Part shown: one piece after another, positions 23,353 through 58,682 of the stretch | Layout: each line of letters opens with the position of its first letter | Numbering within the stretch: the stretch's first letter is position 1 | Source of the DNA: Rebecca billardiae RCC1528 | Lineage: Eukaryota > Protista > Haptophyta | NCBI GenBank assembly: GCA_965240325.2 | Contig: OZ251238.1 | Location: 1,178,001 to 1,242,000 of the forward strand | Length of the DNA stretch: 64,000 bases | Reading direction: 5' to 3' | The notes under the pieces: generated by a model | Told to the model about the DNA's origin: nothing | Seen by the model: the letters and a program-made list of their open reading frames with translations, nothing else | The model's database searches: none | Program-made: the position numbers and the translations under genes

Positions 23353-25139
23353 ATGAGGCGTGGACGCCGTGGGAGCACGGGTTGCAGAGGCCTGCTCAGC
23401 CTCGTCGTCGCGCTCGCAAGCATCAGTCTGGCTGCCACGGCCACGCCAAACCCGCCGCCGCCGAGTCCAAGCCCGCCGCCGAGCCCGCCGCCTCCGCCGC
23501 CGAGCCCCAGCCCACCGCCGAGCCCGCCGCCTCCGCCGCCGAGCCCCAGCCCGCCGCCGAGTCCGACGCCGCCTCCCCCGAGCCCGAGCCCGCCACCGCC
23601 CAGCCCGAGCCCGCCACCAAGCCCAGCACCACCGTCGCCAGACCCGAGCCCGCCGCCCAGCCCGCAGCCTCCGCCGCCGAGCCCGAGTCCGCCGCCGTGG
23701 CCGCAGCCGCCCCCGCCCAGCCCGAGCCCGCCGCCCAGCCCGCAGCCTCCGCCGCCGAGCCCGAGTCCGCCGCCGTGGCCGCAGCCGCCCCCGCCCAGCC
23801 CGAGCCCGCCGCCCAGCCCGCAGCCTCCGCCGCCGAGCCCGAGTCCGCCGCCGTGGCCGCAGCCGCCCCCGCCCAGCCCGAGCCCGCCGCCCAGCCCGGA
23901 GCCCCCTTCACCGAGCCGACGCCCGCCACCGAGTCCGGCACCACCTTCGCCAGACCCGAGCCCGCTGCCCAGCCCGCTGCCTCCGCCGCCACGCCCGAGC
24001 CCGCCGCCGAGCCCTCCTCCGCCGCCGCCGAGTCCCAGTCCTCCGCCGCCACCACCACCCTCGCCGCCGCCGAGCATGTCGCCGCCGTTGCCACCGCCGA
24101 GCCCGCCGCCGCCATCGCCGCCGCCACCACCACCGCCGAGCCCGCCACCCTCGCCACCGCCCTCGCCGCCACCGCCGAGCCGTCCGCCGCCACCGCCACC
24201 GGCGCCGCCGCCCTCGCCGCCGCCCTCGCCGGCACCAACGCCGCCGAGCCCGCCGCCGAGCCCGCCGGCGACACCAAGCCCCAGCACGCCGCCGCACCCG
24301 CCGCCGCCTGCGCCGCCGTCGGCGCCGCCCGACCCGAGCCTGCCGCCACGCCCGGCCCCACCACCGGCTGTGCCGCCCTCCCAGCCGCCTCTGCTTCCTC
24401 CGAGCCCCAGCACGCCGCCGCACCCGCCACCGCCGCCGTCCGACCCGCCGTCTCCGCACCCGGGCTCGCCCCCGAGTCCGTCGCCGCCGCCGCCGAGCCC
24501 GAGCCCGCCATCTCGACCGCCACCTCGACCACCGCCGCCGCCGCCCCGCGCGCCGCTGCCCAGCCGGCCACCGCCGCCACCGCCATCAGCACCGCCGCCA
24601 AGTCCAAGCCTGCCGCCGTCGCTGCCGCCGAGCCCGAGCTCGCCACCGCCGCCGAGCCCTGCAGAGCCGCCGCGGCCGCCGCCACCGCCGCTCAGCTCGC
24701 CACCGCCGAGCCCAAGCCCGCCACCGTCACCCTCGCCGCCGCCGCCGAGCCCGAGCCCGCCTCCGCCCCCACCGCCGCCGCCTCCGAGCCCGAGCCCGCC
24801 GCCACCGCCAAGGCCGGCGGCGCCACCGCAGCCCACAACGCTGCCGCCAAGCCCGCCGCCGCCAAGCCCGAGCCCACCACCGCCGCCACCGCCGCCACCG
24901 CCACCACCGCCGAGCCCGAGCCCGCCGCCACCGCCCAGTCCAGCGCCGCCACCGCAGCCGACACCGCCGCCGCCGAGCCCGCCGCCGCCGAGCCCGAGCC
25001 CACCACCGCCGTCCCCGCCGCCGCCGCCGCCGCCGCCGAGCCCAACACCGCCGCCTGAACCGCTTCCGCCGCCTCCTAGCCCGCCACCGCCGAGCCCGAG
25101 CCCGACGCCGCCACCGCCTCGGAGCTCGAGCCTACCACC

Positions 25140-25170
<31 letters not shown>

Positions 25171-28100
25171 AGCCCGAGCCCGCTGCCACCGCCAAGTCCG
25201 GCGCCGCCACCGCCGCCGCCACCGCCGCCGCCAAGCCCGCCGCCGCCAAGCCCGAGCCCACCACCGCCGCCACCGCCGCCACTCCCACCACCGCCGAGCC
25301 CGAGCCCGCCGCCACCGCCAAGGCCGGCGGCGCCACCGCAGCCCACACCGCCTCCGCCGAGCCCGCCGCCGCCAAGCCCGAGCCCACCACCGCCGCCACC
25401 GCCGCCACCGCCACCACCGCCGAGCCCGAGCCCGCCGCCTTCGCCACCTCCGAGCCCGAGCCCGCCACCGCCACAGAGCCCGCAGCCGCCGCCACCGAGC
25501 AGGGTGCCACCGCCTCCGAGCCCGAGCCCGCCGCCTCCGCCAAGCCCAACACCGCCGCCCAGACCGCTGCCACCGCCTCCGAACCCGCCACCGCCGAGCC
25601 CGAGCCCGCCGCCACCGCCAAGTCCGGCGGCGCCACCGCAGCCCACACCGCCTCCGCCGAGCCCGCCGCCGCCAAGCCCGAGCCCGCCACCGCCGTCCCT
25701 GCCGCCGCCGCCGCCGCCGCCGACCCCAAGCCCTCCGCCTTCGCCTCCGCCGAGTCCCAGCCCGCCGCCTCCACCGAGCCCAACACCGCCGCCCGAACCG
25801 CTGCCACCGCCTCCTAGCCCGCCACCGCCAAGCCCGAGCCCTCCGCCCCCCCCACCGCCCCCACCGCCAAGCCCCAGCCCGCCGCCACCGCCAAGCCCGG
25901 CGCCGCCACCCCTGCCGACACCGCCGCCGCCGAGCCCACCACCACCCAGCCCGAGCCCTCCGCCGCATCCACCGCCACCACCGCCAAGCCCGAGCCCGCC
26001 ACCACCGCCCAGTCCGGCGCCGCCACCGCAGCCAACACCGCCGCCGCCAAGCCCGCCACCACCCAGCCCGAGCCCACCACCGCCACCACCGCCACCGCCG
26101 CCGCCGCCTCCGAGCCCGAGCCCGCCGCCACCACCCAGTCCGGCGCCGCCCAGCCCAAGCCAGCCGCCACCGCCACCTCCGAGCCCGAGCCCGCCGCCGC
26201 CGCCCAGCCCGGCGCCACCACCGCTTCCGACGCCGCCGCCGCCGAGCCCGCCACCGCCGAGCCCGAGCCCGCCACCGCCACAGAGCCCGCAGCCGCCGCC
26301 ACCGAGCAGGGTGCCACCGCCTCCGAGCCCGAGCCCGCCACCGCCACAGAGCCCTCAGCCGCCGCCACCGAGCAGGGTGCCACCGCCTCCGAGCCCGAGC
26401 CCTCCGCCGCCGCCCAGTCCGGCGCCGCCACCAATGCCGACGCCGCCACCGCCGAGCCCGCCACCGCCGAGCCCGAGCCCGCCGCCGCCACCACCTCCGA
26501 GCCCGAGCCCGCCACCGCCTCAGAGCCCGCAGCCGCCGCCACCGAGCAGGGTGCCACCGCCTCCGAGCCCGAGCCCGCCACCGCCACAGAGCCCGCAGCC
26601 GCCGCCACCGAGCAGGGTGCCACCGCCTCCGAGCCCGAGCCCGCCGCCACCGCCCAGTCCGGCGCCGCCACCAATGCCGACGCCGCCACCGCCGAGCCCG
26701 CCACCGCCGAGCCCGAGCCCGCCACCGCCACAGAGCCCGCAGCCGCCGCCACCGAGCAAGGTGCCACCGCCTCCGAGCCCGAGCCCGCCGCCACCGCCCA
26801 GTCCGGCGCCGCCACCAATGCCGACGCCGCCACCGCCGAGCCCGCCACCGCCGAGCCCGAGCCCGCCGCCGCCACCGCCTCCGAGCCCGAGCCCGCCACC
26901 GCCACAGAGCCCGCAGCCGCCGCCACCGAGCAGGGTGCCACCGCCTCCGAGCCCGAGCCCGCCACCGCCGCAGAGCCCGCAGCCGCCGCCACCGAGCAGG
27001 GTGCCACCGCCTCCGAGCCCGAGCCCGCCGCCACCGCCCAGTCCGGCGCCGCCACCAATGCCGACGCCGCCACCGCCGAGCCCGCCACCGCCGAGCCCGA
27101 GCCCGCCGCCGCCACCACCTCCGAGCCCGAGCCCGCCACCGCCACAGAGCCCGCAGCCGCCGCCACCGAGCAGGGTGCCACCGCCTCCGAGCCCGAGCCC
27201 GCCACCGCCGCAGAGCCCGCAGCCGCCGCCACCGAGCAGGGTGCCACCGCCTCCGAGCCCGAGCCCGCCACCGCCACAGAGCCCGCAGCCGCCGTCACCG
27301 AGCAGGGTGCCACCGCCTCCGAGCCCGAGCCCTCCACCGCCGCAGAGCCCGCAGCCGCCGCCACCGAGCAGGGTGCCACCGCCTCCGAGCCCGAGCCCGC
27401 CGCCGCCGCCCAGTCCGGCGCCGCCACCAATGCCGACGCCGCCACCGCCGAGCCCGCCACCGCCGAGCCCGAGCCCGCCGCCGCCACCACCTCCGAGCCC
27501 GAGCCCGCCACCGCCACAGAGCCCGCAGCCGCCGCCACCGAGCAGGGTGCCACCGCCTCCGAGCCCGAGCCCGCCACCGCCGCAGAGCCCGCAGCCGCCG
27601 CCACCGAGCAGGGTGCCACCGCCTCCGAGCCCGAGCCCGCCACCGCCACAGAGCCCGCAGCCGCCGCCACCGAGCAGGGTGCCACCGCCTCCGAGCCCGA
27701 GCCCGCCACCGCCACAGAGCCCGCAGCCGCCGCCACCGAGCAGGGTGCCACCGCCTCCGAGCCCGAGCCCGCCGCCTCCACCACCTCCGAGCCCGAGCCC
27801 GCCACCGCCACAGAGCCCGCAGCCGCCGCCACCGAGCAGGGTGCCACCGCCTCCGAGCCCGAGCCCTCCACCGCCACAGAGCCCGCAGCCGCCGCCACCG
27901 AGCAGGGTGCCACCGCCTCCGAGCCCGAGCCCGCCGCCTCCACCACCTCCGAGCCCGAGCCCGCCACCGCCACAGAGCCCGCAGCCGCCGCCACCGAGCA
28001 GGGTGCCACCGCCTCCGAGCCCGAGCCCGCCGCCGCCGCAGAGCCCGCAGCCGCCGCCACCGAGCAGGGTGCCACCGCCCCCGAGCCCGAGCCCGCCACC

Positions 28101-31100
28101 GCCACAGAGCCCTCAGCCGCCGCCACCGAGCAGGGTGCCACCGCCTCCGAGCCCGAGCCCTCCACCGCCGCAGAGCCCGCAGCCGCCGCCACCGAGCAGG
28201 GTGCCACCGCCTCCGAGCCCGAGCCCGCCGCCTCCACCACCTCCGAGCCCGAGCCCGCCACCGCCACAGAGCCCGCAGCCGCCGCCACCGCGCAGGGTGC
28301 CACCGCCTCCGAGCCCGAGCCCGCCACCGCCACAGAGCCCGCAGCCGCCGCCACCGAGCAGGGTGCCACCGCCCCCGAGCCCGAGCCCGCCACCGCCACA
28401 GAGCCCGCAGCCGCCGCCACCGAGCAGGGTGCCACCGCCTCCGAGCCCGAGCCCGCCGCCGCCGCCCAGTCCGGCGCCGCCACCAATGCCGACGCCGCCA
28501 CCGCCGAGCCCGCCACCGCCGAGCCCGAGCCCGCCGCCGCCACCACCTCCGAGCCCGAGCCCGCCACCGCCACAGAGCCCGCAGCCGCCGCCACCGAGCA
28601 GGGTGCCACCGCCTCCGAGCCCGAGCCCGCCACCGCCGCAGAGCCCGCAGCCGCCGCCACCGAGCAGGGTGCCACCGCCTCCGAGCCCGAGCCCGCCGCC
28701 TCCACCGCCCCCGAGCCCGAGCCCGCCACCGCCACAGAGCCCGCAGCCGCCGCCACCGAGCAGGGTGCCACCGCCTCCGAGCCCGAGCCCTCCACCGCCA
28801 CAGAGCCCGCAGCCGCCGCCACCGAGCAGGGTGCCACCGCCTCCGAGCCCGAGCCCGCCGCCTCCACCGCCCCCGAGCCCGAGCCCTCCACCGCCGCAGA
28901 GCCCGCAGCCGCCGCCACCGAGCAGGTTGCCACCGCCCCCGAGCCCGAGCCCGCCACCGCCACAGAGCCCGCAGCCGCCGCCACCGAGCAGGGTGCCACC
29001 GCCTCCGAGCCCGAGCCCGCCGCCGCCGCCCAGTCCGGCGCCGCCACCCATGCCGACGCCGCCACCGCCGAGCCCGCCACCGCCGAGCCCGAGCCCGCCG
29101 CCGCCACCACCTCCGAGCCCGAGCCCGCCACCGCCACAGAGCCCGCAGCCGCCGCCACCGAGCAGGGTGCCACCGCCTCCGAGCCCGAGCCCGCCACCGC
29201 CGCAGAGCCCGCAGCCGCCGCCACCGAGCAGGGTGCCACCGCCTCCGAGCCCGAGCCCGCCGCCTCCACCGCCTCCGAGCCCGAGCCCTCCACCGCCACA
29301 GAGCCCGCAGCCGCCGCCACCGAGCAGGGTGCCACCGCCTCCGAGCCCGAGCCCGCCGCCTCCACCGCCCCCGAGCCCGAGCCCTCCACCGCCGCAGAGC
29401 CCGCAGCCGCCGCCACCGAGCAGGGTGCCACCGCCTCCGAGCCCGAGCCCGCCACCGCCACAGAGCCCGCAGCCGCCGCCACCGAGCAGGGTGCCACCGC
29501 CTCCGAGCCCGAGCCCGCCGCCGCCGCCCAGTCCGGCGCCGCCACCAATGCCGACGCCGCCACCGCCGAGCCCGCCACCGCCGAGCCCGAGCCCGCCGCC
29601 GCCACCACCTCCGAGCCCGAGCCCGCCACCGCCACAGAGCCCGCAGCCGCCGCCACCGAGCAGGGTGCCACCGCCTCCGAGCCCGAGCCCGCCACCGCCA
29701 CAGAGCCCGCAGCCGCCGCCACCGAGCAGGGTGCCACCGCCTCCGAGCCCGAGCCCGCCGCCGCCGCCCAGTCCGGCGCCGCCACCAATGCCGACGCCGC
29801 CACCGCCGAGCCCGCCACCGCCGAGCCCGAGCCCGCCGCCGCCACCACCTCCGAGCCCGAGCCCGCCACCGCCACAGAGCCCGCAGCCGCCGCCACCGAG
29901 CAGGGTGCCACCGCCTCCGAGCCCGAGCCCGCCACCGCCGCAGAGCCCGCAGCCGCCGCCACCGAGCAGGGCGCCACCGCCTCCGAGCCCGAGCCCACCG
30001 CCGCTGCCCAGTCCGGCGCCGCCCAGCCCAAGCCAGCCGCCACCGCCGCCTCCGAGCCCGAGCCCGCCGCCGCCGCCCAGTCCGGCGCCGCCACCTCTGC
30101 CGACGCCGCCGCCACCGAGCCCGCCGCCTCCGAGCCCGAGCCCGCCGCCACCGCCCAGCCCGGCGCCGCCCAGCCCAAGCCAGCCGCCACCGCCGCCTCC
30201 GAGCCCGAGCCCGCCGCCACCGCCCAGTCCGGCGCCGCCACCTCTGCCGACGCCGCCGCCACCGAGCCCGCCGCCTCCGAGCCCGAGCCCGCCGCCACCG
30301 CCCAGTCCGGCGCCGCCCAGCCCAAGCCAGCCGCCACCGCCGCCTCCGAGCCCGAGCCCGCCGCCACCGCCGAGTCCGGCGCCGCCACCTCTGCCGACGC
30401 CGCCGCCACCGAGCCCGCCGCCTCCGAGCCCGAGCCCGCCGCCACCGCCCAGTCCGGCGCCGCCCAGCCCAAGCCAGCCGCCACCGCCGCCTCCGAGCCC
30501 GAGCCCGCCGCCGCCGCCCAGTCCGGCGCCGCCACCTCTGCCGACGCCGCCGCCACCGAGCCCGCCGCCTCCGAGCCCGAGCCCGCCGCCACCGCCCAGT
30601 CCGGCGCCGCCCAGCCCAAGCCAGCCGCCACCGCCGCCTCCGAGCCCGAGCCCGCCGCCGCCGCCCAGTCCGGCGCCGCCACCTCTGCCGACGCCGCCGC
30701 CACCGAGCCCGCCGCCTCCGAGCCCGAGCCCGCCGCCACCGCCCAGTCCGGCGCCGCCCAGCCCAAGCCAGCCGCCACCGCCGCCTCCGAGCCCGAGCCC
30801 GCCGCCGCCGCCCAGTCCGGCGCCGCCACCTCTGCCGACGCCGCCGCCACCGAGCCCGCCGCCTCCGAGCCCGAGCCCGCCGCCACCGCCCAGTCCGGCG
30901 CCGCCCAGCCCAAGCCAGCCGCCACCGCCGCCTCCGAGCCCGAGCCCGCCGCCGCCGCCCAGTCCGGTGCCGCCCAGCCCAAGCCAACCGCCACCGCCGC
31001 CTCCGAGCCCGAGCCCGCCGCCACCGCCCAGTCCGGCGCCGCCCAGCCCAAGCCAACCGCCGCCGCCGCCTCCAAGCCCGAGCCCACTGCCACCGCCCAG

Positions 31101-33302
31101 TCCGGCGCCGCCACCGCTGCCGACGCCGCCGCCACCGAGCCCGTCACCTCCGAGCCCGAGCCCGCCGCCGCCGCCCAGTCCGGCGCCGCCGCCAATGCCG
31201 ACGCCGCCACCGCCGAGCCCGCCACCGCCGAGCCCGAGCCCGCCGCCTCTACCGCCTCCGAGTCCGAGCCCGCCGCCGCCACAGAGCCCGAGCGTGCCGC
31301 CGCCGTCGATGCCCCCGCCACCCAATCCACCTCCGCCGCTCCCAAGCCCGTTGCTTGAACCCTTGCCGCCTCCACCCGCGCCAAGTCCCCCGCCGCCTCC
31401 GCCATCGTCCTCACCGCCTCCTCCGGGCACGGTCGCAGGCGCTCCTCCATCGACCCCGCCGCCGCCGCCGCCACCGCCGCCACCGCCACCGCCGCCTCCG
31501 CCGAGTCCCAGCCCGCCGCCTCCACCGAGCCCAACACCGCCGCCCGAACCGCTTCCGCCGCCTCCTAGCCCGCCGCCGCCAAGCCCGAGCCCTCCGCCCC
31601 CCCCACCGCCCCCACCGCCAAGCCCCAGCCCGCCACCACCGCCCAGTCCGGCGCCGCCACCGCTGCCGACGCCGCCGCCACCGAGCCCACCACCGCCGAG
31701 CCCGAGCCTACCACCGCCACCACCGCCACCACCGCCACCGCCACCGCCGCCTCCGCCGAGCCCGAGCCCGCCACCGCCGCCAAGCCCAGTCCCGCCGCCG
31801 CGACCAATGCCGCCGCCGCCCAGCTCTCCGTCGCCCAGCCCGAGCCCGACGCCGCCACTGCCGTCGTCGCCGCCGCCGCCGAGCCCACCGCCGTCACCTC
31901 GCAGCCCACCGCCATCGCCGCCGCCATCGCCACCGCCATCGCCGCCGCCATCGCCACCGCCATCGCCGCCGCCATCGCCACCGCCATCGCCGCCGCCATC
32001 GCCGCCACCCGCCAGCCCGGGCCTGTCGCCGCAGTCGCCGCAGCGCCCGCCGCCCACTCCGCCGCCTGCCGTCGACAAGGACGAGTCCGGGCCGCTGCGC
32101 CCGTCGGCGCCGCCCAGCAGCCCGCCCTCCGCGCCTCCGCGCCCGCCGTCGTCGCCGCCCTCCCCGCCGCCGCCGCTCCCAGCCTCGATCCGCATGTCGC
32201 AGCCGGTCTTCTATGTGGGGCAGGACCAGTGGGCGAGCTACTGGCTCGAGCCCGCGCTGGTGCACGCGGCCAACTGGGTCGGCGTCTTCCGGCAGGGCGG
32301 GCGCGCGGGCGACCCGCCGCTCACGTGGGCGTGGGCGCCGGCGCAGGCGGGGCAGCTCAACCTCGGCCACAGCGCGGACGAGGTGCGGGCGTACGACGTC
32401 GTGCTCTTCTCGCAGGGCACGCCGGTGTCCCTCGCGCGGACGGTGATGGTCGTGGCGCACGCGCCGCCGCCGCCGTCGGCGCCGCCGTCGGCGCCGCCGC
32501 CGTCGGCGCCGCCGGCGGTGCCGCCGAGCACGCCGCCGCGCCCGCCGCCACCGCCGCCGCCAAGCGCGCCGCCGAGCCGGCCGCCGCCGCCGCCGCCGCC
32601 GCACCGGCCGCCGCCGAGCCGGCCGCCGTCGCCGCCGAGCCCTGCCCCGAGCCCACCGCCGCCGCCGCCGCCGCCGCTCGCGCGCCCGTTCAGCCCGCCG
32701 CCGCCGCCAGCGAGCCCGCCGCCGAGCTCGCCGCCGCCACGCCCGCCGCCGCCGCCGAGCTCGCCGCCCAGCCCGCTGCCGCCACCGCCGCCGCCACCAC
32801 CGAGCCCGCCGCCGAGCCCGCCGCCAAGCCCACCGCCGCCGCCGCCGAGCCCGCCGAGCGCGCCGCCGAGCGCGCCGCCGCCGAGCCCTCCGCGGTCGCC
32901 GCCGCCGAGCACGCCGCCTTCCTCGCCGCCGCCCTCGCCGCCAGGTTCGCCGCCGCCGCCGCCGCCGCCGCCGTCGCCGCCGCCGCCGTCGTCGCCTCCG
33001 CCGTCGCCGCCGCCGCCGTCGTCGCCGCCGCCGAGCCAGCCGCCGCCGTCGCCGAGCCCGCCGCCGCCGAGCCCGTCGTCGCCGCCGCCCAAGCCACCGC
33101 CGAGCGCGCCTCCGCCGCCGCCACCGCGTCCGCCGCCCCCTTCGGCGCCACCGCCCTCGCCGCTTCCGCCGCCGCCGCCCTCGCCGCCGCCGGCCCCGCC
33201 GCCCAGCTCGCCTCCCTCGCCGCCGTCGGCGCCGCCGCCTCGTCCGCCCGCGCCGCCGCCGCCGCCGCCGCCACCGCCGCCGCCGCCTCGGGCGCCGCCG
33301 CC

Positions 33303-33335
<33 letters not shown>

Positions 33336-38367: not shown

Positions 38368-38398
<31 letters not shown>

Positions 38399-42186: not shown

Positions 42187-42346
42187 ATGTCCGCCTTCGG
42201 CCGGGGCTCGCGTCGCGGCGGCGGTGGCGGCAGCAGTGCGTTCGGAGGCGGCGGCGGCGCGCGCGGTGGACGAGGCAGCAGCGCGTTCGGTAGCGGTGGT
42301 GGCGGCGGCGGCGGCAGCTTTGGCGGTGGCGGCGGCAGCGCCTTTG

Positions 42347-42381
<35 letters not shown>

Positions 42382-42506
42382 CGGGCGGGTGCTCAGCAGG
42401 AGGCGCCCCGCGGCAACCGGTACGGCGGCGGCGGCGCGTTCGGCGGGGCGCCCGCGCAGCCGCCGGGCGGCGGCTTCGGGGGTGGCGGTGGCCGATCGAG
42501 CGCCTT

Positions 42507-42543
<37 letters not shown>

Positions 42544-43496: not shown

Positions 43497-43536
<40 letters not shown>

Positions 43537-43923
43537 TTTGGCGGCGGCGGGAGAGCGGCTGTGCCAGCGTCGGCATTTGGCGGCCGCGGCGGCGGCGGCG
43601 GCGGCGGCCGCGGGTTTGGCGGCGGCGGCCGCGGCTTCGGCGCGGGGGCGGGCGGCGGCGGCGGCGGCGGCGGCGGCGCACATGGCGCGCAGGCCACGGT
43701 CGTCGCCACCCTCGCGCCCGAGCCGCCCGCGCTGCCCGCAGGCGCCGACGCGGCCCTTGGCGCGGCCTCGGCGCCTGGCGGCGGCGCGGACGGCAGCGGC
43801 GCCCCTTCAGCAGAGGCGCTGCAGGCCTGGGGCATCAGCGTGGCTGACTACGCGCTGTTCGCCGCGGCCGACTTTGGGAAGGGGCCGATTCCGGAGGCGG
43901 CGCCGCCGCCCGCGCTCGCCTGA
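42187..43923 (+). CDS. NUP42: Nucleoporin NUP42 / hCG1 / Amo1-like FG-repeat protein, 578 aa
   Basis: Many SAFGG/AFGG repeats, central YLFSAYGP...GDVSPEEWRWEAY block, and C-terminal Gle1-binding-like motif FAAADFGKGPIPEAAPPP. Confidence 0.85.
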
Positions 43924-45879: not shown

Positions 45880-45910
<31 letters not shown>

Positions 45911-48900
45911 GAGACCGCCGCCGTCCCCGCCGCCGAGCCCACCGCCCGGCCAGCCACCGAACCCGCCACCGAGCCCACCACCGAGCCCGCCGCCAAGCCC
46001 GCCACCGCCGAGCCCGCCGCCGGCGCCACCGCCCAGCCCTCCGCCGAGCTCGCCACCGTCACCGCCACCTGCACCACCGCCACGCCCACCACCGAGTCCG
46101 CCACCAAGCCTGCCGCCTCCACGCCCACCACCGTCGCCGCCACCGTCGCCGCCACCCAGCATGCCGCCCAACCCGCCGCCAAGCCCACCACCAAGCCCGC
46201 CTCCGCCATCACCACCACCGTTGCCACCACCGAGCCCGCCGCCCAGCCCACCGCCCAGCCCACCGCCCAGCCCGCCACCGCGGCCGCCGCCGAGCCCACC
46301 GCCGAGCCCACCGCCACCCAGCCTGCCACCGTCGCCCCCGCCGAGCCCACCGCCGGGTCCTCCACCACGCCCACCGCCATCACCGCCACCCAGCCCGCCA
46401 CCGACTCCTCCGCCGTCACCACCACCAAGCACGCCACCGGCGCCGCCACCAATCCCGCCACCAAGCCCACCGCCCGGCGAGCCGCCGAACCCGCCACCGA
46501 GCCCACCACCGAGCCCACCGCCAAGCCCACCACCGCCAAGCCCGCCGCCGGCTCCACCGCCCAGCCCTCCGCCGAGCTCGCCACCGTCACCGCCGCCGGT
46601 GCCGCCACCAAGCCCGCCGCCAAGCCCACCGCCAAGCCCGCCGCCTCCAGGCCCGCCACCGTCCCCGCCGCCGTCGCTGCCACCCAGCCCACCGCCAAGT
46701 CCTCCGCCGTCACCACCGCCAACACCACCACCGCGCCCACCGCCGAGCCCACCTCCGCGCCCACCACCAAGCCCGCCGCCGTCACCACCGCCAGCCCCGC
46801 CACCATCACCGCCGCCGATCACACCACCAAGCCCGCCACCAAGCCCACCCCCGAGCCCGCCGCCGAGCCCGCCGCCCTCGCCGCCGCCCTCCCCACCGCC
46901 CTACCCACCGCCCTCGCCGCCACCACCAAGTCCGCCGCCCTCGCCGCCGCCGAGCCCACCGCCATCGCCGCCGCCCAGTCCGCCACCACCAGCACCGCCA
47001 CCGAGCCCGCCGCCGAATCCACCGCCTTTGCCACCGCCAAGTCCGCCCCCGTCCCCGCCGCCAAGCCCACCGCCTTCGCCTCCTCCAAGCCCGCCACCAC
47101 CGAGCTCGCCGCCAAGCCCACCCCCGAGCCCGCCTCCGAGTCCGCCGCCCTCGCCACCGCCGTCACCGCCGCCGTCGCCACCGCCGTCGCCTCCGCCCTC
47201 ACCGCCGCCGCCGTCACCGCCGCCGTCGCCGCCGCCGAGTCCGCCACCGTCACCGCCGCCGAGCCCGCCACCACCAAGCCCACCGCCCAGCCCGCCGCCC
47301 AGCCCGCCTCCAAGCCCGCCGCCAAGCCCGCCACCCTCGCCTCCGCCCTCGCCCCCGCCCTCGCCGCCGCCGTCACCAACACCGCCATCCTCACCGCCTT
47401 CGCCGCCGCCGAGCCCGCCGCCATCGCCGCCGCCGAGCCCACCGCCGGCACCCCCACCGTCACCGCCGCCATCGCCACCGCCGAGTCCACCGCCGCCATC
47501 GCCGCCACCGTCGCCGCCGCCAAGTCCACCACCGTCGCCGCCGCCCAGCCCGCCGCCCTCGCCGCCGCCCAGCCCGCCGCCCTCGCCACCTCCAAGCCCG
47601 CCGCCGCCAAGCCAGCCGCCAAGCCCGCCGCCGAGCCCACCCCCGAGCCCGCCGCCGAGCCCGCCGCCCTCGCCACCGCCTTTGCCGCCGCCCTCTCCGC
47701 CGCCCTCGCCGCCGCCACCGTCACCACCACCGTCGCCACCACCGAGCCCGCCGCCGTCTCCGCCACCGAGCCCACCACCATCACCTCCACCGTCACCGCC
47801 GCCATCGCCACCGCCGAGCCCACCGCCACCCTCGCCGCCACCCTCGCCGCCACCAAGTCCACCACCCTCGCCGCCACCGAGCCCACCACCCTCGCCGCCG
47901 CCGAGCCCGCCGCCCTCGCCACCGCCAAGCCCGCCGCCGCCGAGCCCGCCGCCGAGCCCACCGCCCAGCCCGCCGCCCAGCCCGCCGCCCTCGCCGCCGC
48001 CCTCACCGCCGCCCTCACAGCCGCCCTCGCCGCCGCCTTCACCGCCACCACCAAGTCCGCCGCCGTCGCCACCGCCAAGCCCGCCACCGTCACCGCCGCC
48101 AAGCCCGCCGCAACCGAGCCCTCCGCCAAGCCCGCCACCCAGCCCCCCTCCACGCCCGCCACCGAGCCCGCCGCCCTCGCCGCCGCCCTCGCCGCCTCCC
48201 TCACCCCCGCCCTCGCCCCCGCCACCGTCACCGCCGCCCTCGCCGCCGCCGAGCCCCCCGCCGTGTCCGCCACCGAGCCCACCACCATCACCGCCCCCGA
48301 GCCCGCCGCCCTCGCCACCTCCGAGCCCCCCGCCACCATCATCTCCACCCTCGCCGCCGCCCAGCCCGCCACCGTCGCCGCCGCCAAGCCCGCCGCCATC
48401 GCCACCGCCGAGCCCGCCGCCATCGCCACCGCCGAGCCCGCCACAGCCGAGCCCGCCGCCGAGCCCGCCGCCGAGCCCTCCGCCGAGCCCGCCGCCCTCG
48501 CCACCACCGTTCCCGCCGCCGAGCCCGCCACCCTCGCCGCCGCCCTCGCCACCGCCGCCATCGCCCCCGCCGAGCCCACCACCCTCACACCCGCCGAGCC
48601 CGCCACCAAGCCCGCCACCATCGCAGCCGCCGAGCCCGCCACCGTCGCCGCCACCAAGCCCGCCGCCGCCGAGCCCACCACCATCGCCACCGCCCAGCCC
48701 TCCGCCGTCGCCCCCTCCAAGCCCGCCACCGCCAAGCCCACCGCCAAGCCCACCGCCGAGCCCGCCTCCCAGTCCACCGCCCTCGCCGCCGCCCTCGCCA
48801 CCGCCCTCGCCTCCACCATCGCCCCCGCCGTCGCCGCCGCCGCCAAGCCCACCTCCCTCGCCGCCGCCAAGCCCACCGCCGTCGCCGCCGCCAAGCCCGC

Positions 48901-51900
48901 CGCCGCCGAGCCCCCCACCGAGCCCACCACCCAGCCCGCCGCCGAGCCCGCCGCCCTTGCCACCGCCCTCGCCGCCGCCCGCACCGCCGCCCTCACCGCC
49001 GCCCTCGCCCCCGCCACCAAGCCCGCCGCCCTCGCCACCGCCGAGCCCGCCACCGTCACCGCCGCCAAGCCCGCCGCCGCCGAGCCCGCCACCATCGCCA
49101 CCGCCGAGCCCACCACCGAGCCCGCCACCGATCTCGCCGCCGTCACCACCACCCTCGCCACCGCCGTCCCCGCCACCGAGCCCGCCGCCCCCAAGACCTC
49201 CGCCAAGCCCACCTCCAAGCCCGCCGCCCAGCCCACCCCCGTCGCCGCCGCCGCCGTCGCCACCCCCGTCGCCGCCGCCGAGCCCACCGCCGAGCCCACC
49301 ACCAAGACCACCGCCATCGCCGCCACCGAGCCCACCGCCAAGCCCACCCCCGAGCCCTCCGCCACCCAGCCTGCCACCAAACCCACCGCCTCCCAGTCCA
49401 CCACCATCGCCACCGCCGTCACCGCCTCCCAGCCCACCGCCCTCGCCACCGCCAAGTCCACCGCCAAGCCCACCGCCCAGTCCACCTCCATCGCCGCCCC
49501 CTCCGAGTCATCCGCCCTCGCCCCCCCCCTCGCCGCCGCCGAGCCCGCCACCGAGCCCGCCGCCGAGCCCACCGCCAAGCCCGCCGCCGAGCCCGCCGCC
49601 ATCGCCTCCGCCCAGCCCACCTCCGTCCCCGCCACCAAGGCCCCCGCCCAGCCCACCTCCACCGACCCCGCCTCCGTCTCCACCGCCGTCGCCGCCACCG
49701 AGCCCACCGCCATCTCCGCCACCAAGCCCGCCACCGAGCCCACCACCCTCGCCTCCGCCTAGCCCACCGCCGCCAAGCCCACCGCCCAGCCCGCCGCCCT
49801 CGCCACCCCCCTCGCCACCGCCCTCGCCGCCACCGAGCCCCCCACCGTCCCCGCCGCCCAACCCGCCGCCCAGTCCGCCGCCTGGTGCGCCACCCAGCCC
49901 ACCACCGTCGCCGCCGCCGTCGCCGCCACCGCCATCGCCGCCCCCCAGCCCACCGCCAAGCCCGCCGCCGAGCCCGCCGCCAAGCCCACCGCCAAGCCCG
50001 CCTCCAAGCCCACCACCCTCGCCCCCACCGAGCCCACCGCCACCGAGCCCACCGCCGATCCCGCCGCCATCACCGCCGCCGAGTCCGCCACCTTCGCCAC
50101 CACCAAGCCCGCCGCCAAGCCCGCCGCCCTCGCCGCCACCCTCGCCACCGCCAAGTCCGCCTCCAAGCCCACCGCCCTCGCCACCGCCCAGCCCACCGCC
50201 GCCCAGCCCGCCGCCCAGCCCGCCACCCTTGCCACCGCCCTCGCCACCGCCCTCGCCGCCACCAAGCCCACCGCCGAGCCCGCCACCGAGCCCGCCACCA
50301 TCGCCACCACCGTCGCCGCCACCAAGCCCTCCACCCTCACCGCCGCCATCGCCCCCACCGCCATCGCCCCCGCCGAGCCCGCCACCCTCGCCACCACCGA
50401 GCCCACCACCGAGCCCGCCACCATTGCCACCACCGGGCCCGCCTCCATCGCCGCCACCGAGCCCACCGCCGAGCCAGCCGCCGTCACCACCACCATCGCC
50501 GCCACCAAGCCCGCCGCCGCCAAGCCCGCCACCGTCACCGCCGCCATCACCACCACCGAGGCCACCACCATCGCCGCCGCCGAGCCCACCGCCAAGCCCT
50601 CCGCCCTCGCCTCCGCCGAGCCCGCCACCACCAAGTCCACCGCCGAGCCCACCGCCCTCACCTCCGCCCTCGCCTCCACCATCACCGCCACCTAGCCCGC
50701 CACCGGGCCCTCCGCCAAGCCCGCCGCCGAGCCCACCACCGTCACCGCCGCCATCACCACCACCGAGCCCACCACCGCCGTCGCCACCGCCGTCACCACC
50801 GCCATCGCCGCCGCCCAGCCCACCGCCGTCACCACCTCCGAGTCCGCCGCCAAGCCCACCACCATCGCCGCCGCCCAGTCCGCCGCCGCCAAGCCCGCCG
50901 CCAAGCCCGCCGCCCTCACCACCGCCCTCAACACCGCCTACGCCGCCACCGAGCCCACCCCCGAGCCAGCCACCAAGCCCACCGCCATCGCCACCACCGT
51001 CTCCGCCACCGAGCCCCCCACCCTCGCCGCCACCATCACCGCCACCTAGCCCGCCACCGGGCCCTCCGCCAAGCCCGCCGCCGAGCCCACCACCGTCACC
51101 GCCGCCGAACCCGCCTCCTTCACCGCCGCCGTCGCCTCCACCGCCTTCGCCACCCCCGAGCCCGCCCCCGTCGCCACCGCCCGGCCCGCCGCCAAGCCCG
51201 CCGCCAACGCCACCACCGAGCCCGCCTCCGTCGCCGCCACCGAGCCCGCCACCGGGCCCTCCGCCAAGCCCGCCGCCGAGACCACCACCGTCACCGCCGC
51301 CGAACCCGCCTCCTTCACCGCCGCCGTCGCCACCACCGCCTTCGCCACCCCCGAGCCCGCCCCCGTCGCCACCGCCTAGCCCGCCGCCAAGCCCGCCACC
51401 ATTGCCACCACCGGGCCCGCCTCCGTCGCCGCCACCGAGCCCGCCACCCAGCCCGCCGCCGTCACCGCCGCCATCACCACCACCGAGCCCACCACCGCCG
51501 TCGCCACCGCCGTCACCACCGCCATCGCCGCCGCCCAGCCCACCGCCGTCACCACCTCCGAGTCCGCCGCCAAGCCCACCACCATCGCCGCCGCCCAGTC
51601 CGCCGCCGCCAAGCCCGCCGCCAAGCCCGCCGCCCTCACCACCGCCCTCAACACCGCCTACGCCGCCACCGAGCCCACCCCCGAGCCCGCCACCAAGCCC
51701 AACGCCATCGCCACCACCGTCTCCGCCACCGAGCCCTCCACCCTCGCCGCCCCCGTCGCCCCCACCGCCGTCGCCCCCACCGAGCCCGCCACCGTCGCCA
51801 CCGCCCAGTCCGCCGCCTAGCCCGCCGCCCAGCCCGCCACCGTCACCACCGCCCTCCCCGCCCCCGAGCCCACCGCCGAGTTCGCCGCCGTCGCCGCCAC

Positions 51901-54900
51901 CTTCACCGCCACCGAGCCCGCCGCCACCGAGCCCACCACCTTCACCGCCACCATCGCCGCCGCCGAGCCCGCCACCATCACCGCCACCCAGTCCACCGCC
52001 GAGCCCGCCGCCCTCGCCACCACCGAGCCCGCCGCCACCAAGCCCACCGCCGAGCCCGCCGCCATCACCACCACCCAGCCCGCCACCCAGCCCGCCACCG
52101 TCGCCGCCACCAAGCCCGCCTCCGTCTCCCCCGCCGTCGCCGCCACCGCCATCGCTACCACCGAGTCCGCCACCGTCGCCGCCGCCCAGCCCGCCGCCCA
52201 GCCCACCACCGTCGCCGCCGCCCAGCCAACCGCCCTTCCCGCCCCCGAGCCCACCGCCGAGCCCACCACCGTCGCCGCCACCATCGCCGCCACCGAGCCC
52301 GCCGCCGCCGAGCCCACCTCCATCACCACCGCCATCGCCGCCGCCGAGCCTACCACCGTCGCCGCCACCCAGTCCACCGCCGAGCCCACCGCCATCGCCA
52401 CCGCCGTCACCACCGCCACCAAGCCCACCGCCGAGTCCGCCGCCCTCATCACCGCCATCGCCACCACCGTCACCACCGCCGAGCCCGCCGCCGTCACCAC
52501 CACCCAACCAGCCACCAAGCCCGCCACCATCTCCGCCACCGAGCCAGCCTCCGTCGCCACCACCATCGCCGCCACCGCCATCGCCGCCGCCGAGCCCACC
52601 ACCGTCGGCACCGCCCTCCCCGCCTCCGAGCCCGCCGCCGAGCCCGCCGCCATCGCCACCGCCCTCCCCACCGCCGAGCCCGCCGCCACCAAGCCCACCC
52701 CCGTCACCACCGCCGTCACCGCCGCCGAGCCCGCCTCCATCACCGCCACCAAGTCCACCACCAAGTCCACCGCCGTCGCCACCGCCGAGCCCACCGCCAC
52801 CGAGCCCGCCGCCCTCACCACCGCCATCGCCACCGCCCTCACCACCGCCGAGCCCGCCGCCGTTACCACCACCCAGCCCGCCACCAAGCCCGCCACCATC
52901 TCCGCCACCGAGCCAGCCTCCGTCGCCACCACCATCGCCGCCACCGCCATCGCCGCCGCCGAGCCCACCACCGTCGGCACCGCCCTCCCCGCCTCCGAGC
53001 CCGCCGCCGAGCCCGCCGCCATCGCCACCGCCCTCCCCACCGCCGAGCCCGCCGCCACCAAGCCCACCCCCGTCACCACCGCCGTCACCGCCGCCGAGCC
53101 CGCCTCCATCACCGCCACCAAGTCCACCACCAAGTCCACCGCCGTCGCCACCGCCGAGCCCACCGCCACCAAGCCCGCCACCGAGCCCGCCGCCCTCGCC
53201 ACCGCCGTCACCACCGCCCTCCCCACCGCCGAGCCCGCCACCGAGGCCCCCGCCATCGCCACCACCGTCGCCGCCGCCGAGCCCGCCACCACCGAGCCCG
53301 CCGCCATCACCACCGCCGTCACTGCCGCCGAGCCCGCCACCATCGCCGCCACCAAGTCCACCGCCAAGCCCACCGCCCTCGCCACCGCCGTCACCACCGC
53401 CACCAAGCCCGCCGCCGAGTCCGCCGCCCTCGCCACCGCCATCGCCACCACCGTCGCCACCGCCGAGCCGGCCACCCTCACCACCACCCAGCCCGCCGCC
53501 AAGCCCGCCACCATCGCCACCACCGAGCCCGCCTCCGTCGCCCCCGCCATCGCCGCCACCGCCTTCGCCGCCGCCGAGCCCGCCGCCACCGAGCCCACCA
53601 CCATCACCATTGCCATCGCCGCCACCAAGCCCACCACCATCACCGCCACCAAGTCCATCACCAAGCCCACCGCCATCGCCACCACCAAGCCCACCGCCAC
53701 CAAGTCCACCGCCGAGCCCGCCGCCGTCGCCGCCACCATCGCCGCCACCGAGCCCGCCGCCGCAGAGCCCGCCGCTATCACCACCGCCATCGCCGCTGCC
53801 CAGCCCGCCGCCCTCGCCGCCGCCGTCACCACCGCCCCCAAGCCCGCCGTCGCAGAACACGCCATCGCCTTCACCCTCACCGCCACCGCCACCAACGGCG
53901 CCGCCCTCTGCATCATCGCCACTGCCCTCGCCGCCGCCCAGCCCCCTGCCAGCAAGCCCATCCCTGAGCCCTCCGCCGTTGCCGCCGACGAGCCCACTGC
54001 AGCCATCTGTGCCACCAGCGCCGCCGCCTAGCCCACAGCCGTCTGCACCGCCAGCACCAGCACCGCCGACGTCGCCTCCACCACCGGCGCTGCCTCCATC
54101 GCTGCCACCGAGCCCATTGCCAGCTCCACCGCCATTGCCGCCAGCAATGCCGCCACCGCCGCCGCGTGCAACGCCGTTCCCGCCACCATCACCACCCAGC
54201 CCGCCGCCATTTCCGCCGCCACCCTTCCTACAGCCGCTACCGCCACCCCTACCACCACCACGCACACCGCCATCACCGCCATCGGCGTCGCCACCGCCTC
54301 CACCACCCAGCCCGCCACCGATCCCACCACCATCGCCGCCACCGCGCCCTCCAACGCCACCACCAGCCTCAGCGCCGCCACAGAGACCACCACCAAGCAC
54401 ATCGTCTCCGAGCACGCTGCCATCGCCACCGCCGTCACCGCCGCCAGGCCCACCTCCGCTTTCCCCGCCCTCTCAACCATCGCCCTTCCATCCACCACCC
54501 CAAGAGCCCCCGTCGTCTCCGCCATCGCTGCCGCCCAGCTCACCCCCGTTGCCGCCACCTCCACCATCGATGCCGCCGCTGCCTCCGCCGCCACCACGTG
54601 CTGAGCCATACCCACCGCCCGCGCCACCGGGCATGCCGCCTGGCGCGCCGCCTAGCCCACCGCCACGACTGCCACCAGCCCCACCGCCCAGCCCGCCGCC
54701 AAGCCCGCCGCCCGCACAGCCACCCAACCCGCCGCCCGGCCGGCCACCCTGGTCGCCACCGTCGCCTCCGCCGTCCTTGCTGCCGTCGCCGCCCGCGTCA
54801 CCGTTGTCACCACCGCCAAAGCCCCCACCGCTCCCACCACACAGCCCACCTACCGCCGGCCTCCCGCCAGCAGTCCCACCCTTCCAGCCGGCTCCTCCCG

Positions 54901-57900
54901 TCTCTCCTGGCCTGCCACCAAGCATGCCGCCCCCGAGCCGATCGCCCCGCCTTCCGCCATCGCCGCAGTCCCCGCCACCATCGCAGCCGCCCTTTCCACC
55001 ACCGTCGCCGCCTCCGCCGTCGACACCACCGCTGCCTCCGCCGCCGCCGCGCGCCGAGCCATTCCCCCCACCCTCGACGCGGAGCCCTCCGTCCAGGCCG
55101 CCACCCAGCCCACTGCTGCCATCCCCGAGTCCGCCCCCGCAGCTGCCGCCCAGCTTGCCCGCGCCGACGCAGTTTGTGCTCCGGCTCAACACAAGCGCGC
55201 ACGGCTTTGGCGCACTGAACGCGTCGGTGCTCGAGGCGCTGGCGGCGGAACTCGGCGTGGACGTCGATCGCCTGAGCGTGCGCGGGACGAGCATAGGCGC
55301 CGACGGCTTGCTCAGCGTAGTGCTCGCACTGACCACGGCTGCCGACGAGACACCCGTGCAGCCCGTGCCGGCGCTCAGTCCAAGCGGTGCGGATGGGTCG
55401 GCGGCGAGCCTGCAGCAGCTCTCTGCACGGCTGGGAGTGCCGGTGGCGGAGGTGACGCACGCGCAGGACCCGCCGCCACCCCCGCACCCGCCAAGGCCAA
55501 GACCTCCTCCCAGCCCGCCCCCGCCGCCTCTGCCACCTTCGCCGCCTCCAGCTGGCGGCGGCAGCACCCACCAGTACCTCTCACTCACGCTGAGCGTGAC
55601 CGAGGCCGAGTTTGGTGAGCTCAGCGACGAGGTGCGCGCGGCCATCGCTGCCGAGCTCGGCGTACACCCAACGCGCGTGCGTGTCGAGTCTGCGCGGCCA
55701 AGTGCGGACGGCACGCTCATCGCGGTGTTCAGGCTGACGACAGCGCCGCTGCTGGACGAGGTGCCCGTGGCCGACCCGGTGGGCGCGCTCACGCCCGGCG
55801 CGACTGCCGGGTCAGCCGCCAGCTTGGATGAGCTGTCGGCGCGGCTGGGCGTCTCCGTGGTCGCACCGCCGCACGCGCACGTGCCACCGTCGCCGCCGCC
55901 CGCCCCACCGTCGCCGCCGTCGCTGCCACCATCCCCACCGGCGACGCCGTCCCCACCACCCCGACCGCCATCGCCACCGTCGCCACCGCCGCTGTCTGAT
56001 GGCACGGTGCAGCACGTCGCGCTGACGGTGAACGTGACGAGCGCAGAGTTTGACGGCGCAACGGACAGTGTGCTTGGTGCGCTGGCCTCAAAGCTGGGCG
56101 TGCGGCGCAGTCGGCTGCGCGTCCAGTCGACGGCGGCCACGGATGACGGGCTGCTCGGCGTGGTGATCACGCTGCACACGGACGGCGCGGCGGGCGAGGC
56201 GGACGTGGACGTGATGCCCATGCTATCGCCGGGCGCCACGCCTGCGTCGCCAGCCGAGCTGGCGGAGCTCTCGCGCGCTTTGGGCGTGCCTGTGGTCGAG
56301 CCCGCCAGGGCGCACATGCCGCCATCGCCACCGCCTTCGCCGCCATCGCCACCGCCGCCGCCACCATCGCCGTTGCTGCTGCCACCGCCGCCGCCACCGC
56401 CCTCGCCATCGCCACCGCCGGACTTTGACGCGGAGACATACGCGCTGCTGGTCCTCGACATGTCCGCGGAAGCGTTTGCGCCACTATCAGCGCGCACAGC
56501 TGAGCGCGTGGCTGCAATGCTGGGCGTGAACGTGTCGCGCGTGACGGTTGAAGCTGTGTTTGCGGATGACGGCGTTGGTGGCGATGGGCTGCTCCGTGTG
56601 GTGGTGAAGCTGACCACCGACATGTCTGCCGGAGAGGCGGGTGTCGATGCCCACTCGCTGCTAACACCCGGCGCGACGCCGTCGTCCCCGGAGAGCCTGG
56701 GCGCGCTGTCGGCCGCGCTGGGCGTACCAGTCAGCGCGGTGCCGAGCGCGCACGTCCCGCCTTCTGCGCCGCCTGCCGCGCCGTCAGCGCCCCCACACCC
56801 GCCGCCCAACCACCTGCGCGAGCAGTACGTGACGCTGCTGCTCGACACGTCGGCTGCCGGTTTCGCATCGGCGCAGGCTGGTGTGCTGGCGGCGATCGCG
56901 GCGCAGCTGGGTGTGAGCGCTGCGCGCGTGAGCGTGGAGACGACGTCCAACGTGGACGGTGGCCTGGCGGTGGTGATCAAGGTGGCGATGGACGCCATGG
57001 ACGCCGGAGTCGGCGTGGACGTCATGAGCGCACTCGCGCCTGGCGCCACAAGTGAAGCACCATCGAGCTTGGCCGAGCTGTCAGCCATGCTGGGCGTGGA
57101 CGTGCTCGGCATGCCGACGGCCCACGTCCCACCTTCAGCACCGCCCCTGCCGCCTCTGCCACCTTCGCCGCCTCCAGCTGGCGGCGGCAGCACCCACCAG
57201 TACCTCTCGCTCACGCTGGGTGTGACCGAGGCCGAGTTTGGTGAGCTCAGCGACGAGGTGCGCGCGGCCATCGCTGCCGAGCTCGGCGTACACCCAACGC
57301 GCGTGCGTGTCGAGTCTGCGCGGCCAAGTGCGGACGGCACGCTCATCGCGGTGTTCAGGCTGACGACAGCGCCGCTGCTGGACGAGGTGCCCGTGGCCGA
57401 CCCGGTGGGCGCGCTCACGCCCGGCGCGACTGCCGGGTCAGTCGCCAGCTTGGACGAGCTGTCGGCGCGGCTGGGCGTCTCCGTGGTCGCACCGCCGCAC
57501 GCGCACGTGCCACCGTCGCCGCCGCCCGCCCCACCGTCGCCGCCGTCGCTGCCACCATCCCCACCGGCGACGCCGTCCCCACCGCCCCGACCGCCATCGC
57601 CGCCATCGCCACCGCCGCTGTCTGATGGCACGGTGCAGCACGTCGCGCTGACGGTGAACGTGACGAGCGCAGAGTTTGACGGCGCAACGGACAGTGTGCT
57701 TGGTGCGCTGGCCTCAAAGCTGGGCGTGCGGCGCAGTCGGCTGCGCGTCCAGTCGACGGCGGCCACGGATGACGGGCTGCTCGGCGTGGTGATCACGCTG
57801 CACACGGACGGCGCGGCGGGTGAGGCGGACGTGGACGTGATGTCGATGCTATCGCCGGGCGCCACGCCTGCGTCGCCAGCCGAGCTGGCGGAGCTCTCGC

Positions 57901-58682
57901 GCGCTTTGGGCGTGCCTGTGGTCGAGCCCGCCAGGGCGCACATGCCGCCATCGCCACCGCCTTCGCCGCCGCCGCCCTTTTCGAGTCCGCCAGACGCATC
58001 GTCTTCGCCGGCTAGGCCGCCTCTGCCATCACAGCCTGGGCATCCTCCCAGCGCACCGCGTGGGCCCGTACCAGCCAGCCCCGCCAGCCCGCCCGCGCCG
58101 CCTCCGCCCTCCGCCCCTGGGCTTTCCGTGCCTCCGCTGCCGCCCTCACCATCGCCGCCTCCTGGTCGGCCACCCCTTGCACCTCCACCACCGCTCACTG
58201 ACTCCCTCCTCGAGGCGACGGACGACCTGTCAGCCACGGCAACGCCTGCCATCAGCGCCGAAGCACAGCAGAGCACCATCCGACCGGAGCCTGCCAGCGT
58301 GATCACCGCGCCGAGGAACCGGACTACCTTTGGCGAGTACGTGACCGAGCCGCGCTTCTTGGGCACTTCCCTGGTGTGGTGGGGCGTCCTCGTCCCGACC
58401 AACGTCGCGCTGGTCTGGGTGCTCGCAAAGACCTGGTACAAGTGCAGCGCTCGGCATGCGATGGCCCTCGTGCATGCAGACGCCTCCGAGCGCCTCACCA
58501 TGCACGCGCCGGTGCACATGGCAGACTCTGAACGTTCCAGCATGCCGCCGCCAAGCCGCGCGCGCAGCGCGTGGAACTCGCGCAGCGTGACGACGGTATC
58601 GGCCGCTGCGCCTGGCAGAAGTGGGCGCGAGCTCAGTAGCGTGCGCTCGTCCTGGGCGGTGGACGACAGGGTGCAGGTGTGA
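44355..58682 (+). CDS. Giant single-pass surface protein, ~4775 aa, single exon: signal peptide, Cys-rich head, (SPPP)n shaft, 7 SEA-like modules, TM, short tail
   Basis: Signal MRMTRSALLLLAITPRLVHG. About 150-aa Cys-rich region with GFYSP/GYYSP motifs. SPPP repeats at 44880-55160. Seven ~100-aa modules (A..LGV....V.V ... L..LSA.LGV.V). TM LVWWGVLVPTNVALVWVLA; the protein ends DDRVQV. Confidence 0.88.
44880..55160 (+). repeat. Coding (Ser-Pro3/4)n extensin-like repeat, ~3430 codons
   Basis: Continuous SPPP/SPPPP translation with mixed CCG/CCA/CCC/CCT and AGC/TCG/TCA codons; some larger internal duplications. Confidence 0.95.
55523..57970 (+). repeat. Near-identical ~820-bp intragenic duplication (55523-56344 and 57149-57970) covering two SEA-like modules
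   Basis: Offset 1626 bp; only scattered substitutions (e.g. LSVTE/LGVTE, GSAAS/GSVAS, VMPML/VMSML). Confidence 0.93.

Follow-up and report, generated by a model that had tools for sequence, protein, structure and literature searches.

Two neighboring giant genes in the haptophyte Rebecca billardiae predict separately anchored proline-rod proteins that share a SEA-like module

We analyzed a 64,000-nucleotide stretch of the Rebecca billardiae RCC1528 genome (GCA_965240325.2, contig OZ251238.1, positions 1,178,001 to 1,242,000, forward strand; hereafter the window, with positions counted from its first letter) that carries two giant neighboring genes, here called A and B. The reading we favor, with reasonable but limited confidence, is that A and B are separate genes, each encoding a giant rod of the hydroxyproline-rich glycoprotein type that is anchored in the membrane on its own, and that their adjacency and the 1% match between their rod lengths are most likely coincidence. 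Both predicted proteins have their own signal-peptide-like start and their own membrane helices, and B, which is equipped with a signal peptide, a membrane helix, and a cytoplasmic tail, would have no need of a base provided by A. An earlier reading of the window from its letters alone (the sequence-only reading) had proposed that A and B may assemble together as a single filament or sensor. We found no support for this proposal: the proteins carry separate anchors, the module that they share is only 36% identical between them, their G+C content at third codon positions (GC3) differs (∼0.97 in A versus ∼0.80 in B), and the nearest homologues in Diacronema lutheri lie on different contigs.

The two genes are co-oriented, very long open reading frames (ORFs; 6,138 codons open for A and 4,859 for B in the ORF list of the window) with one gene between them, just as first described. 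As the start of each we took the first methionine ahead of a signal-peptide-like segment; for B this choice is supported by the relatives of its head domain, in which a signal peptide likewise comes immediately ahead of the first conserved cysteine. G+C content in the window runs from 60 to 88%, two long stretches of the forward strand have a strong skew of C over G, and there are no N characters. In gene A, the in-frame GC3 stays at 0.93 to 0.99 over the whole 7.4-kb nonrepeat part (34108-41496), with the second position at about 0.5 to 0.85, which argues for genuine coding sequence without introns and upholds, for A, the earlier description of a single-exon gene. GC3 in gene B, only 3 kb away, is 0.79 to 0.88.

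The predicted rod of A begins directly after the signal segment, with no head in front of it, and leads down to a base of signaling type (Table 1). It is interrupted 84% of the way along by a small domain of about 96 amino acids, which matched no Pfam or NCBIfam family and for which an atlas feature search returned SKICH and fn3_PAP at a score of 0.91, as leads only. At the foot of the rod come one SEA/MAD-like module and a cysteine-bounded loop (C...NY...DDGSC) that is not present in B or in the relatives fetched. Further toward the membrane lie a REJ domain and, some 50 amino acids before helix 1, a GPS-type motif; the Pfam GPS profile (PF01825) scores 19.2 bits for A, under its cutoff of 22.5. 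An IQ-like basic helix is placed between helices 1 and 2 and a long low-complexity loop containing the EF-hand pair between helices 3 and 4, so that with the N terminus outside the IQ-like motif and the EF-hands would both fall in the cytosol. No PLAT domain was found in A at a Pfam E value of ≤0.1, the loop after helix 1 being filled by the IQ-like helix, and PKD_channel gave no Pfam match; a sequence search of the PDB with A returned EF-hand proteins only. Taken together, these predicted parts, from the REJ domain and GPS-type motif through the five helices to the IQ-like motif and the EF-hands, bear out the signaling-type base that had been attributed to this protein.

Gene B is predicted to be laid out like an animal membrane mucin, with a head, a rod, seven SEA-like beads in tandem, one helix, and a short tail. 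The cysteine-rich tip proposed for it is there, as the 17-cysteine head ahead of the rod. A proline-rich stretch of about 135 amino acids lies between the seven modules and the membrane helix. Within the array, an 836-bp block recurs 1,626 bp downstream with 98% identity at the protein level; this repeat reflects either a recent duplication or a duplication made in assembly, the latter being less likely.

When boundaries were set manually, the rods measured 3,459 amino acids in A (2,913 + 546) and 3,429 in B. A blind rule (at least 45% proline in 30-amino-acid windows) gave 2,862 + 15 + 538 = 3,415 amino acids for A and ∼3,328 + 69 (∼3,400) for B, and the claimed match in length, about 1%, stands in this assembly under either definition; summing the two rods of A is one among several possible length comparisons. 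Run-length counts likewise agree with the claim that the two shafts are written in different repeat grammars. Proline runs in A are mostly of one (305 runs) or four (204 runs), set in units such as SPS, QSPQ, and SRV, while B has 633 runs of three prolines separated mostly by serine. The superperiod of the B rod comes from runs of four prolines, which are spaced 37 amino acids apart in 32 of 73 intervals and otherwise 21 or 53, corresponding to every 4, 8, or 12 SPPP units plus 5 residues. Tyrosines number 0, 0, and 2 in the three rods. The repeats also differ greatly in age: about 5 kb of A rod 1 (26.2 to 31.3 kb) consists of nested tandem units of 66, 147, 240, and 294 bp at 75 to 89% identity, and the B rod is degenerate at the DNA level. 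Both extracellular lengths have been altered recently by tandem duplication, through the young units of A rod 1 and the two added beads of B. At a rise of 0.31 nm per residue, as implied by 429 residues spanning 133 nm in Chlamydomonas (PMC11015965), the predicted rods could reach about 1.07 μm (A) and 1.06 μm (B) if fully extended. We estimate that the head of B would stand further from the membrane by the length of its seven beads and linkers, roughly 0.1 μm.

We also weighed whether the lengths, or even the genes, are not as they seem, with repeats collapsed or expanded during assembly or with one or both genes being silent relics kept open by GC-rich repeats. Half of the 51-mers in A rod 1 are repeated, a block of B is doubled at ∼98 to 99% identity, and neither protein is present in the collection of 5.8 billion proteins that we searched, all of which would fit such an explanation. 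Several observations make it decidedly improbable nonetheless. The longest exact repeats are only 448 bp (A rod 1) and 291 bp (B rod); 91% of 51-mers in the B rod and 96% in A rod 2 are unique; the window is free of N characters; and ∼2,460 nonrepeat codons of A and ∼1,180 of B remain open with a strong third-position GC signal. The length of A is moreover the sum of two separate arrays (8.7 and 1.6 kb) and that of B comes from one (10.3 kb), so an artefact of read length would not yield the match, and we rejected that explanation of it. An assembly artefact is thus unlikely as the source of the match, A rod 1 being the riskier of the rods because only 50% of its 51-mers are unique.

The two proteins have in common a module of about 105 amino acids. 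BLASTP aligned the A module with the B array at 37% identity over 103 amino acids (E = 7e-5), a hidden Markov model (HMM) built from the seven copies of B alone recovered the A copy (conditional E = 4.4e-7), and the alignment of the A copy with the B copies has 16 invariant columns; by sequence, we consider the modules homologous. Identity is 36% between A and B and 45 to 47% among B's own copies, and the A copy falls outside the diversity of those in B. The sequence-only reading had the same SEA-like module ending both shafts; homology and fold agree with this, but B has seven tandem copies rather than one. A confident AlphaFold2 (AF2) model on this alignment (predicted local distance difference test score [pLDDT], 87; predicted template modeling score [pTM], 0.80) has the order strand-helix-strand-strand-helix-helix-strand, which fits the beta-alpha-beta-beta-alpha-beta sandwich of SEA domains. 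In an exhaustive structural search, its top matches (Z = 7.3 to 9.2) were the ferredoxin-like domain of Nup54 (9.2), CELSR1, CDH23 MAD28 and PCDH15 MAD12 (8.2 to 8.7), MUC16 SEA (8.0, with a second match at 7.0), IA-2 (7.9), and the Notch2 HD (7.3). In the main, these are domains that sit next to the membrane in long extracellular proteins, and "SEA-like" is therefore fair as a label for fold and position; since the fold class also takes in the unrelated Nup54 domain, fold alone is no proof of common descent or function.

Foldseek alone gave no match to the module model at an E value of ≤0.001, and the Pfam SEA profile (PF01390) gave none at ≤0.1, with a faint ALE2_N match at 0.08. The autoproteolysis motif G-S-[VI]-V-V is absent from the module; its place at the turn is taken by D-G-[L/T/G]-L in the B copies and by A-S-V in the A copy, and no conserved Gly-Ser is present. 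Fold neighbors in the atlas were plant ALE2_N, KIAA0319, and haptophyte clusters, in one of which 97% of members carry Ephrin_rec_like. The HMM detected no further copies in 24 fetched proteins of relatives or in six-frame ORFs of six related loci, and a word search of the C-terminal 1,176 amino acids of B against proteins of 2,626 to 8,356 amino acids gave one chance-level match only. The shared module is most likely old, reflecting a common stock of domains.

Relatives were compared at 30 to 40% identity and are paralogues or distant relatives rather than orthologues, so that comparing their neighborhoods tests conservation of linkage only weakly. With the B head as query, exhaustive HMMER searching yielded 18 representative relatives, of which 8 reached E ≤ 1e-10; the cysteine pattern is kept in the alignment, and several relatives carry the domain right after a signal peptide. 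In one, the head is followed by about 40 proline-rich amino acids and then a membrane helix. Another, from D. lutheri (GCA_019448385.1, JAGTXO010000007.1, positions 10001-13378 of the fetched locus), is annotated as 219 amino acids over a 3.7-kb range, whereas the DNA there forms one ORF of 1,125 amino acids with a signal peptide, head, ∼830-amino-acid SPPP rod, membrane helix, and tail; the annotation seems to have treated the rod as an intron and removed it. SEA-like beads are missing from this D. lutheri gene, and its neighbors include neither a REJ nor an FG gene. Members of the head family thus carry rods of ∼40, ∼830, or ∼3,430 amino acids. A search for loci with the head alignment added three marine metagenome contigs (33% identity) in which the domain occupies a C-terminal position in unrelated surroundings, and none of them is an orthologue. 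The B head itself had no Pfam match, a profile search of the PDB returned nothing, and the atlas feature search gave no usable match. Its AF2 model is weak (pLDDT, 62), and the sole fold matches, to cysteine-rich domains of TNFR type, EphA2, and CaSR at Z ≤ 4.7, are a lead only.

The best relatives of the REJ-to-helix part of A are 32 to 38% identical and have REJ, GPS, and EF-hand in common with it, some with TIG repeats replacing the rod. The relative in D. lutheri (KFE25_002410, contig JAGTXO010000027) begins at the REJ region, with no rod upstream and unrelated neighbors. Our literature search for the REJ domain in haptophytes found no paper.

Among characterized proteins, the closest analogue of both extensin-like rods would be MST3 (Mstax) of Chlamydomonas, a single glycosylated polyproline-II rod whose N terminus is distal and whose anchor is of polycystin type (PMC11015965; PMC10602792). 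Polyproline-II helices span hundreds of nanometers in this alga, in which seven proteins pair polyproline with LRR, SRCR, SEA, or small cysteine-rich domains, and the MST3 anchor is the PKD2-like half of a channel that is completed by SIP (PMC11015965). What A and B would have in common with MST3 is a giant N-distal proline rod, tied to the membrane in MST3 by a polycystin-family part; the rods of A and B, at 69 to 72% proline in Ser-Pro3-4 units, fit a polyproline-II rod in composition. Unlike MST3, A combines a front half of the REJ/GPS kind with five helices, and B has a single helix; an anchor of the MST3 type was not seen, with no PKD-channel match in A or B, homologues of SIP and MST1 not having been searched for. 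The rods also recall extensins and the Chlamydomonas sexual agglutinins in their Ser-Pro3-5 repeats and head-on-shaft layout, but they lack the tyrosine cross-link motifs of extensins, and A and B are predicted to be integral membrane proteins rather than wall components.

The base of A, with its REJ domain and a GPS-type motif just before helix 1, has its likeness in polycystin-1, PKDREJ, and the sea-urchin REJ receptor. It differs from polycystin-1 in having no PLAT domain, five helices instead of eleven, no TOP or channel part, and an IQ-like motif and EF-hand pair inside the membrane domain, and it gave no sequence match in the PDB to solved polycystin chains. Judged from its predicted domains, A resembles the sensory front half of polycystin-1 but does not qualify as a member of that family. 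Gene B is closest in plan to MUC16 and MUC1, which also combine a long rod suited to O-glycosylation, tandem SEA-fold beads by the membrane, one helix, and a short tail (the better of the two MUC16 SEA matches covers 100 residues at a root mean square deviation of 3.4). Its rod, however, is built from extensin-like Ser-Pro3 units and not from Pro/Thr/Ser sequence, it bears a cysteine-rich head at the tip, and its modules have neither a Pfam SEA match nor the cleavage motif; the resemblance to animal membrane mucins is probably convergent. CDH23 MAD28, PCDH15 MAD12, the Notch HD, and IA-2 offer a further parallel, in that a ferredoxin-like domain of a force-bearing protein lies where its long extracellular chain meets the membrane, though module sequence identity to them is only 7 to 12%.

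If A and B work independently, as we favor, hydroxylation and O-glycosylation would turn both rods into stiff polyproline-II helices standing out from the surface of the cell or flagellum, with the SEA/MAD-like modules serving as load-bearing joints beside the membrane. In A, a pull on the rod could then reach the REJ/GPS base, with calcium as the readout, and the head of B may bind a ligand or a surface.

The proposal of a two-part filament or sensor holds instead that the shared modules join the two rods, either lengthwise or at the foot, with B supplying an adhesive tip and A a signaling base. It draws on the adjoining, co-oriented genes, on rods of 3,459 and 3,429 amino acids, on a homologous module at both rod ends, and on the precedent of a proline-rich hair made of two proteins and linked to membrane proteins of polycystin type (PMC11015965). 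In that precedent, the partner of the MST3 rod is MST1, a small protein present in ∼84 copies as a coat around it, not a second full-length rod (PMC11015965). B is anchored independently, the modules have low identity with the A copy outside the diversity of B's, and GC3 differs between the genes. Their upstream regions share no motif beyond what shuffled controls show. Seven beads and linkers lengthen the reach of B and have no counterpart in A, relatives of the head have rods of ∼40 and ∼830 amino acids, and both extracellular lengths were changed recently by tandem duplication. As to linkage, the nearest D. lutheri homologues of the A base and the B head lie on different contigs without such neighbors, although these are distant relatives and not orthologues. 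We consider the two-part filament very unlikely. The parts named in the sequence-only reading have thus fared better than their assembly: the cysteine-rich tip of B, the signaling-type base of A, and the extensin-like rods hold up, and for the pairing there is nothing beyond adjacency, an old module, and the length match. The most specific version, in which A and B form one surface or flagellar structure of ∼1.1 μm with rods held equal, SEA-like feet paired, the head of B making contact, and the base of A reporting load as a calcium signal, strikes us as more improbable still.

Similar lengths could also arise without contact, if A and B stood in one surface or flagellar coat and selection on its thickness (∼1.1 μm) kept their reach alike. 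Equal predicted rod length despite unrelated grammars and repeat ages is the pattern expected of selection on length and not of shared descent. On the other hand, the rods of ∼40 and ∼830 amino acids in relatives of the B head and the recent duplications that altered both lengths are at odds with a common ruler, which we regard as unlikely. Three points nevertheless weigh against taking A and B as independent genes matched by coincidence. A 1% match between adjoining rods of ∼3,450 amino acids is not trivial; the lack of conserved linkage is weakly tested, since the relatives found are paralogues and no orthologues were among them; and the head model is of low confidence (pLDDT, 62).

The gene between A and B encodes a glycine-rich FG-repeat protein of 578 amino acids (40% Gly, 27 FG and 14 SAFG motifs), which the sequence-only reading had named NUP42. 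That name, which implies an N-terminal CCCH finger and a Gle1-binding C terminus in addition to FG repeats, was not confirmed: the FG and SAFG motifs are present, but the protein has no match in Pfam, NCBIfam, or the PDB, a database search with its central part found no relatives, and no CCCH finger pattern occurs nearby on the forward strand (41.4 to 44.0 kb). Other genes in the window have no evident tie to the rods. They include a TPR-CHAT protein (4712-8092), a UCH ubiquitin hydrolase split over two frames by an intron or frameshift (10134-13192), an EamA-type transporter on the reverse strand (19780-21462), and an MFS transporter (61283-62749).

TABLE 1 Predicted features of genes A and B and of the gene between them (positions in the window; aa, amino acids; KD, hydropathy value)
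Feature	Positions	Strand	Description
Gene A	23353-41496	+	6,047 aa; uninterrupted ORF; headless proline-rod protein with REJ/GPS base and five predicted membrane helices
A signal-peptide-like N terminus (aa 1-31)	23353-23445	+	Basic start, then hydrophobic segment at aa 13-31, KD 1.93
A rod 1 (2,913 aa)	23446-32184	+	69% Pro, 18% Ser, no Tyr or Cys
A small domain interrupting rod (∼96 aa)	32185-32472	+	Non-Pro sequence, predicted folded
A rod 2 (546 aa)	32473-34110	+	69% Pro
A single SEA/MAD-like module at rod foot	34111-34422	+	BLASTP and HMM homology to copies in B
A Cys-bounded loop (20 aa)	34402-34461	+	Followed by Pro linker of ∼55 aa
A REJ domain	35515-36780	+	Pfam PF02010, E = 1.9e-36, 126 bits versus cutoff of 25
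A GPS motif (C-x-C-x-H-L-T-x-F at aa 4855)	37789-37944	+	Motif read directly from sequence
A membrane helix 1, IQ-like basic helix (aa 5039-5065), membrane helices 2 and 3	38071-38907	+	Hydropathy peaks at aa 4907-4925, 5113-5131, and 5164-5185
A EF-hand pair	40912-41088	+	Pfam EF-hand_7, E = 1.1e-10; PDB matches to centrin, calmodulin, and RSP7 chains
A membrane helices 4 and 5	41197-41403	+	Hydropathy peaks at aa 5949-5974 and 5994-6017
Intervening FG-repeat, Gly-rich gene	42187-43923	+	27 FG, 14 SAFG, 40% Gly; nucleoporin-like
Gene B	44355-58682	+	4,775 aa; uninterrupted ORF; predicted mucin-like type I membrane protein
B cysteine-rich head (∼155 aa)	44415-44879	+	17 Cys, 3 N-x-S/T sites
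B rod (3,429 aa)	44880-55166	+	72% Pro, 21% Ser; SPPP units, 37-aa superperiod
B seven tandem SEA/MAD-like modules	55158-57965	+	Pro linkers of 9 to 29 aa; HMM domain E values 1e-44 to 1e-52
B recent duplicate making modules 6 and 7	57136-57971	+	Copy of 55510-56345 (modules 2 and 3), ∼98 to 99% DNA identity
B membrane helix (aa 4673-4691) and 84-aa cytoplasmic tail	58371-58679	+	Hydropathy 1.85, sole peak in B after the start

New here are the homology and SEA/MAD-type fold of a module common to a REJ receptor-like and a mucin-like rod protein, and a head family (TNFR/Eph-like, as a fold lead only) with rods from 40 to 3,430 amino acids, including a misannotated D. lutheri relative. That relative, with 219 amino acids annotated and an ORF of 1,125 in the DNA, illustrates how public annotation can lose such genes. 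The paired-length idea rests on one coincidence; if true, it would amount to a genetically encoded pair of micrometer-scale rulers. Should the rods exist in the predicted form, micrometer distances at the cell surface would be set by single polypeptides, and this in a lineage only distantly related to the green algae, the source of the only solved example, the mastigoneme. Gene B suggests that the layout of animal membrane mucins is also present in an alga, with an extensin-type rod replacing the mucin sequence. Finding the same bead at the base of a REJ-type receptor as well points to a juxtamembrane joint that load-bearing surface proteins have in common.

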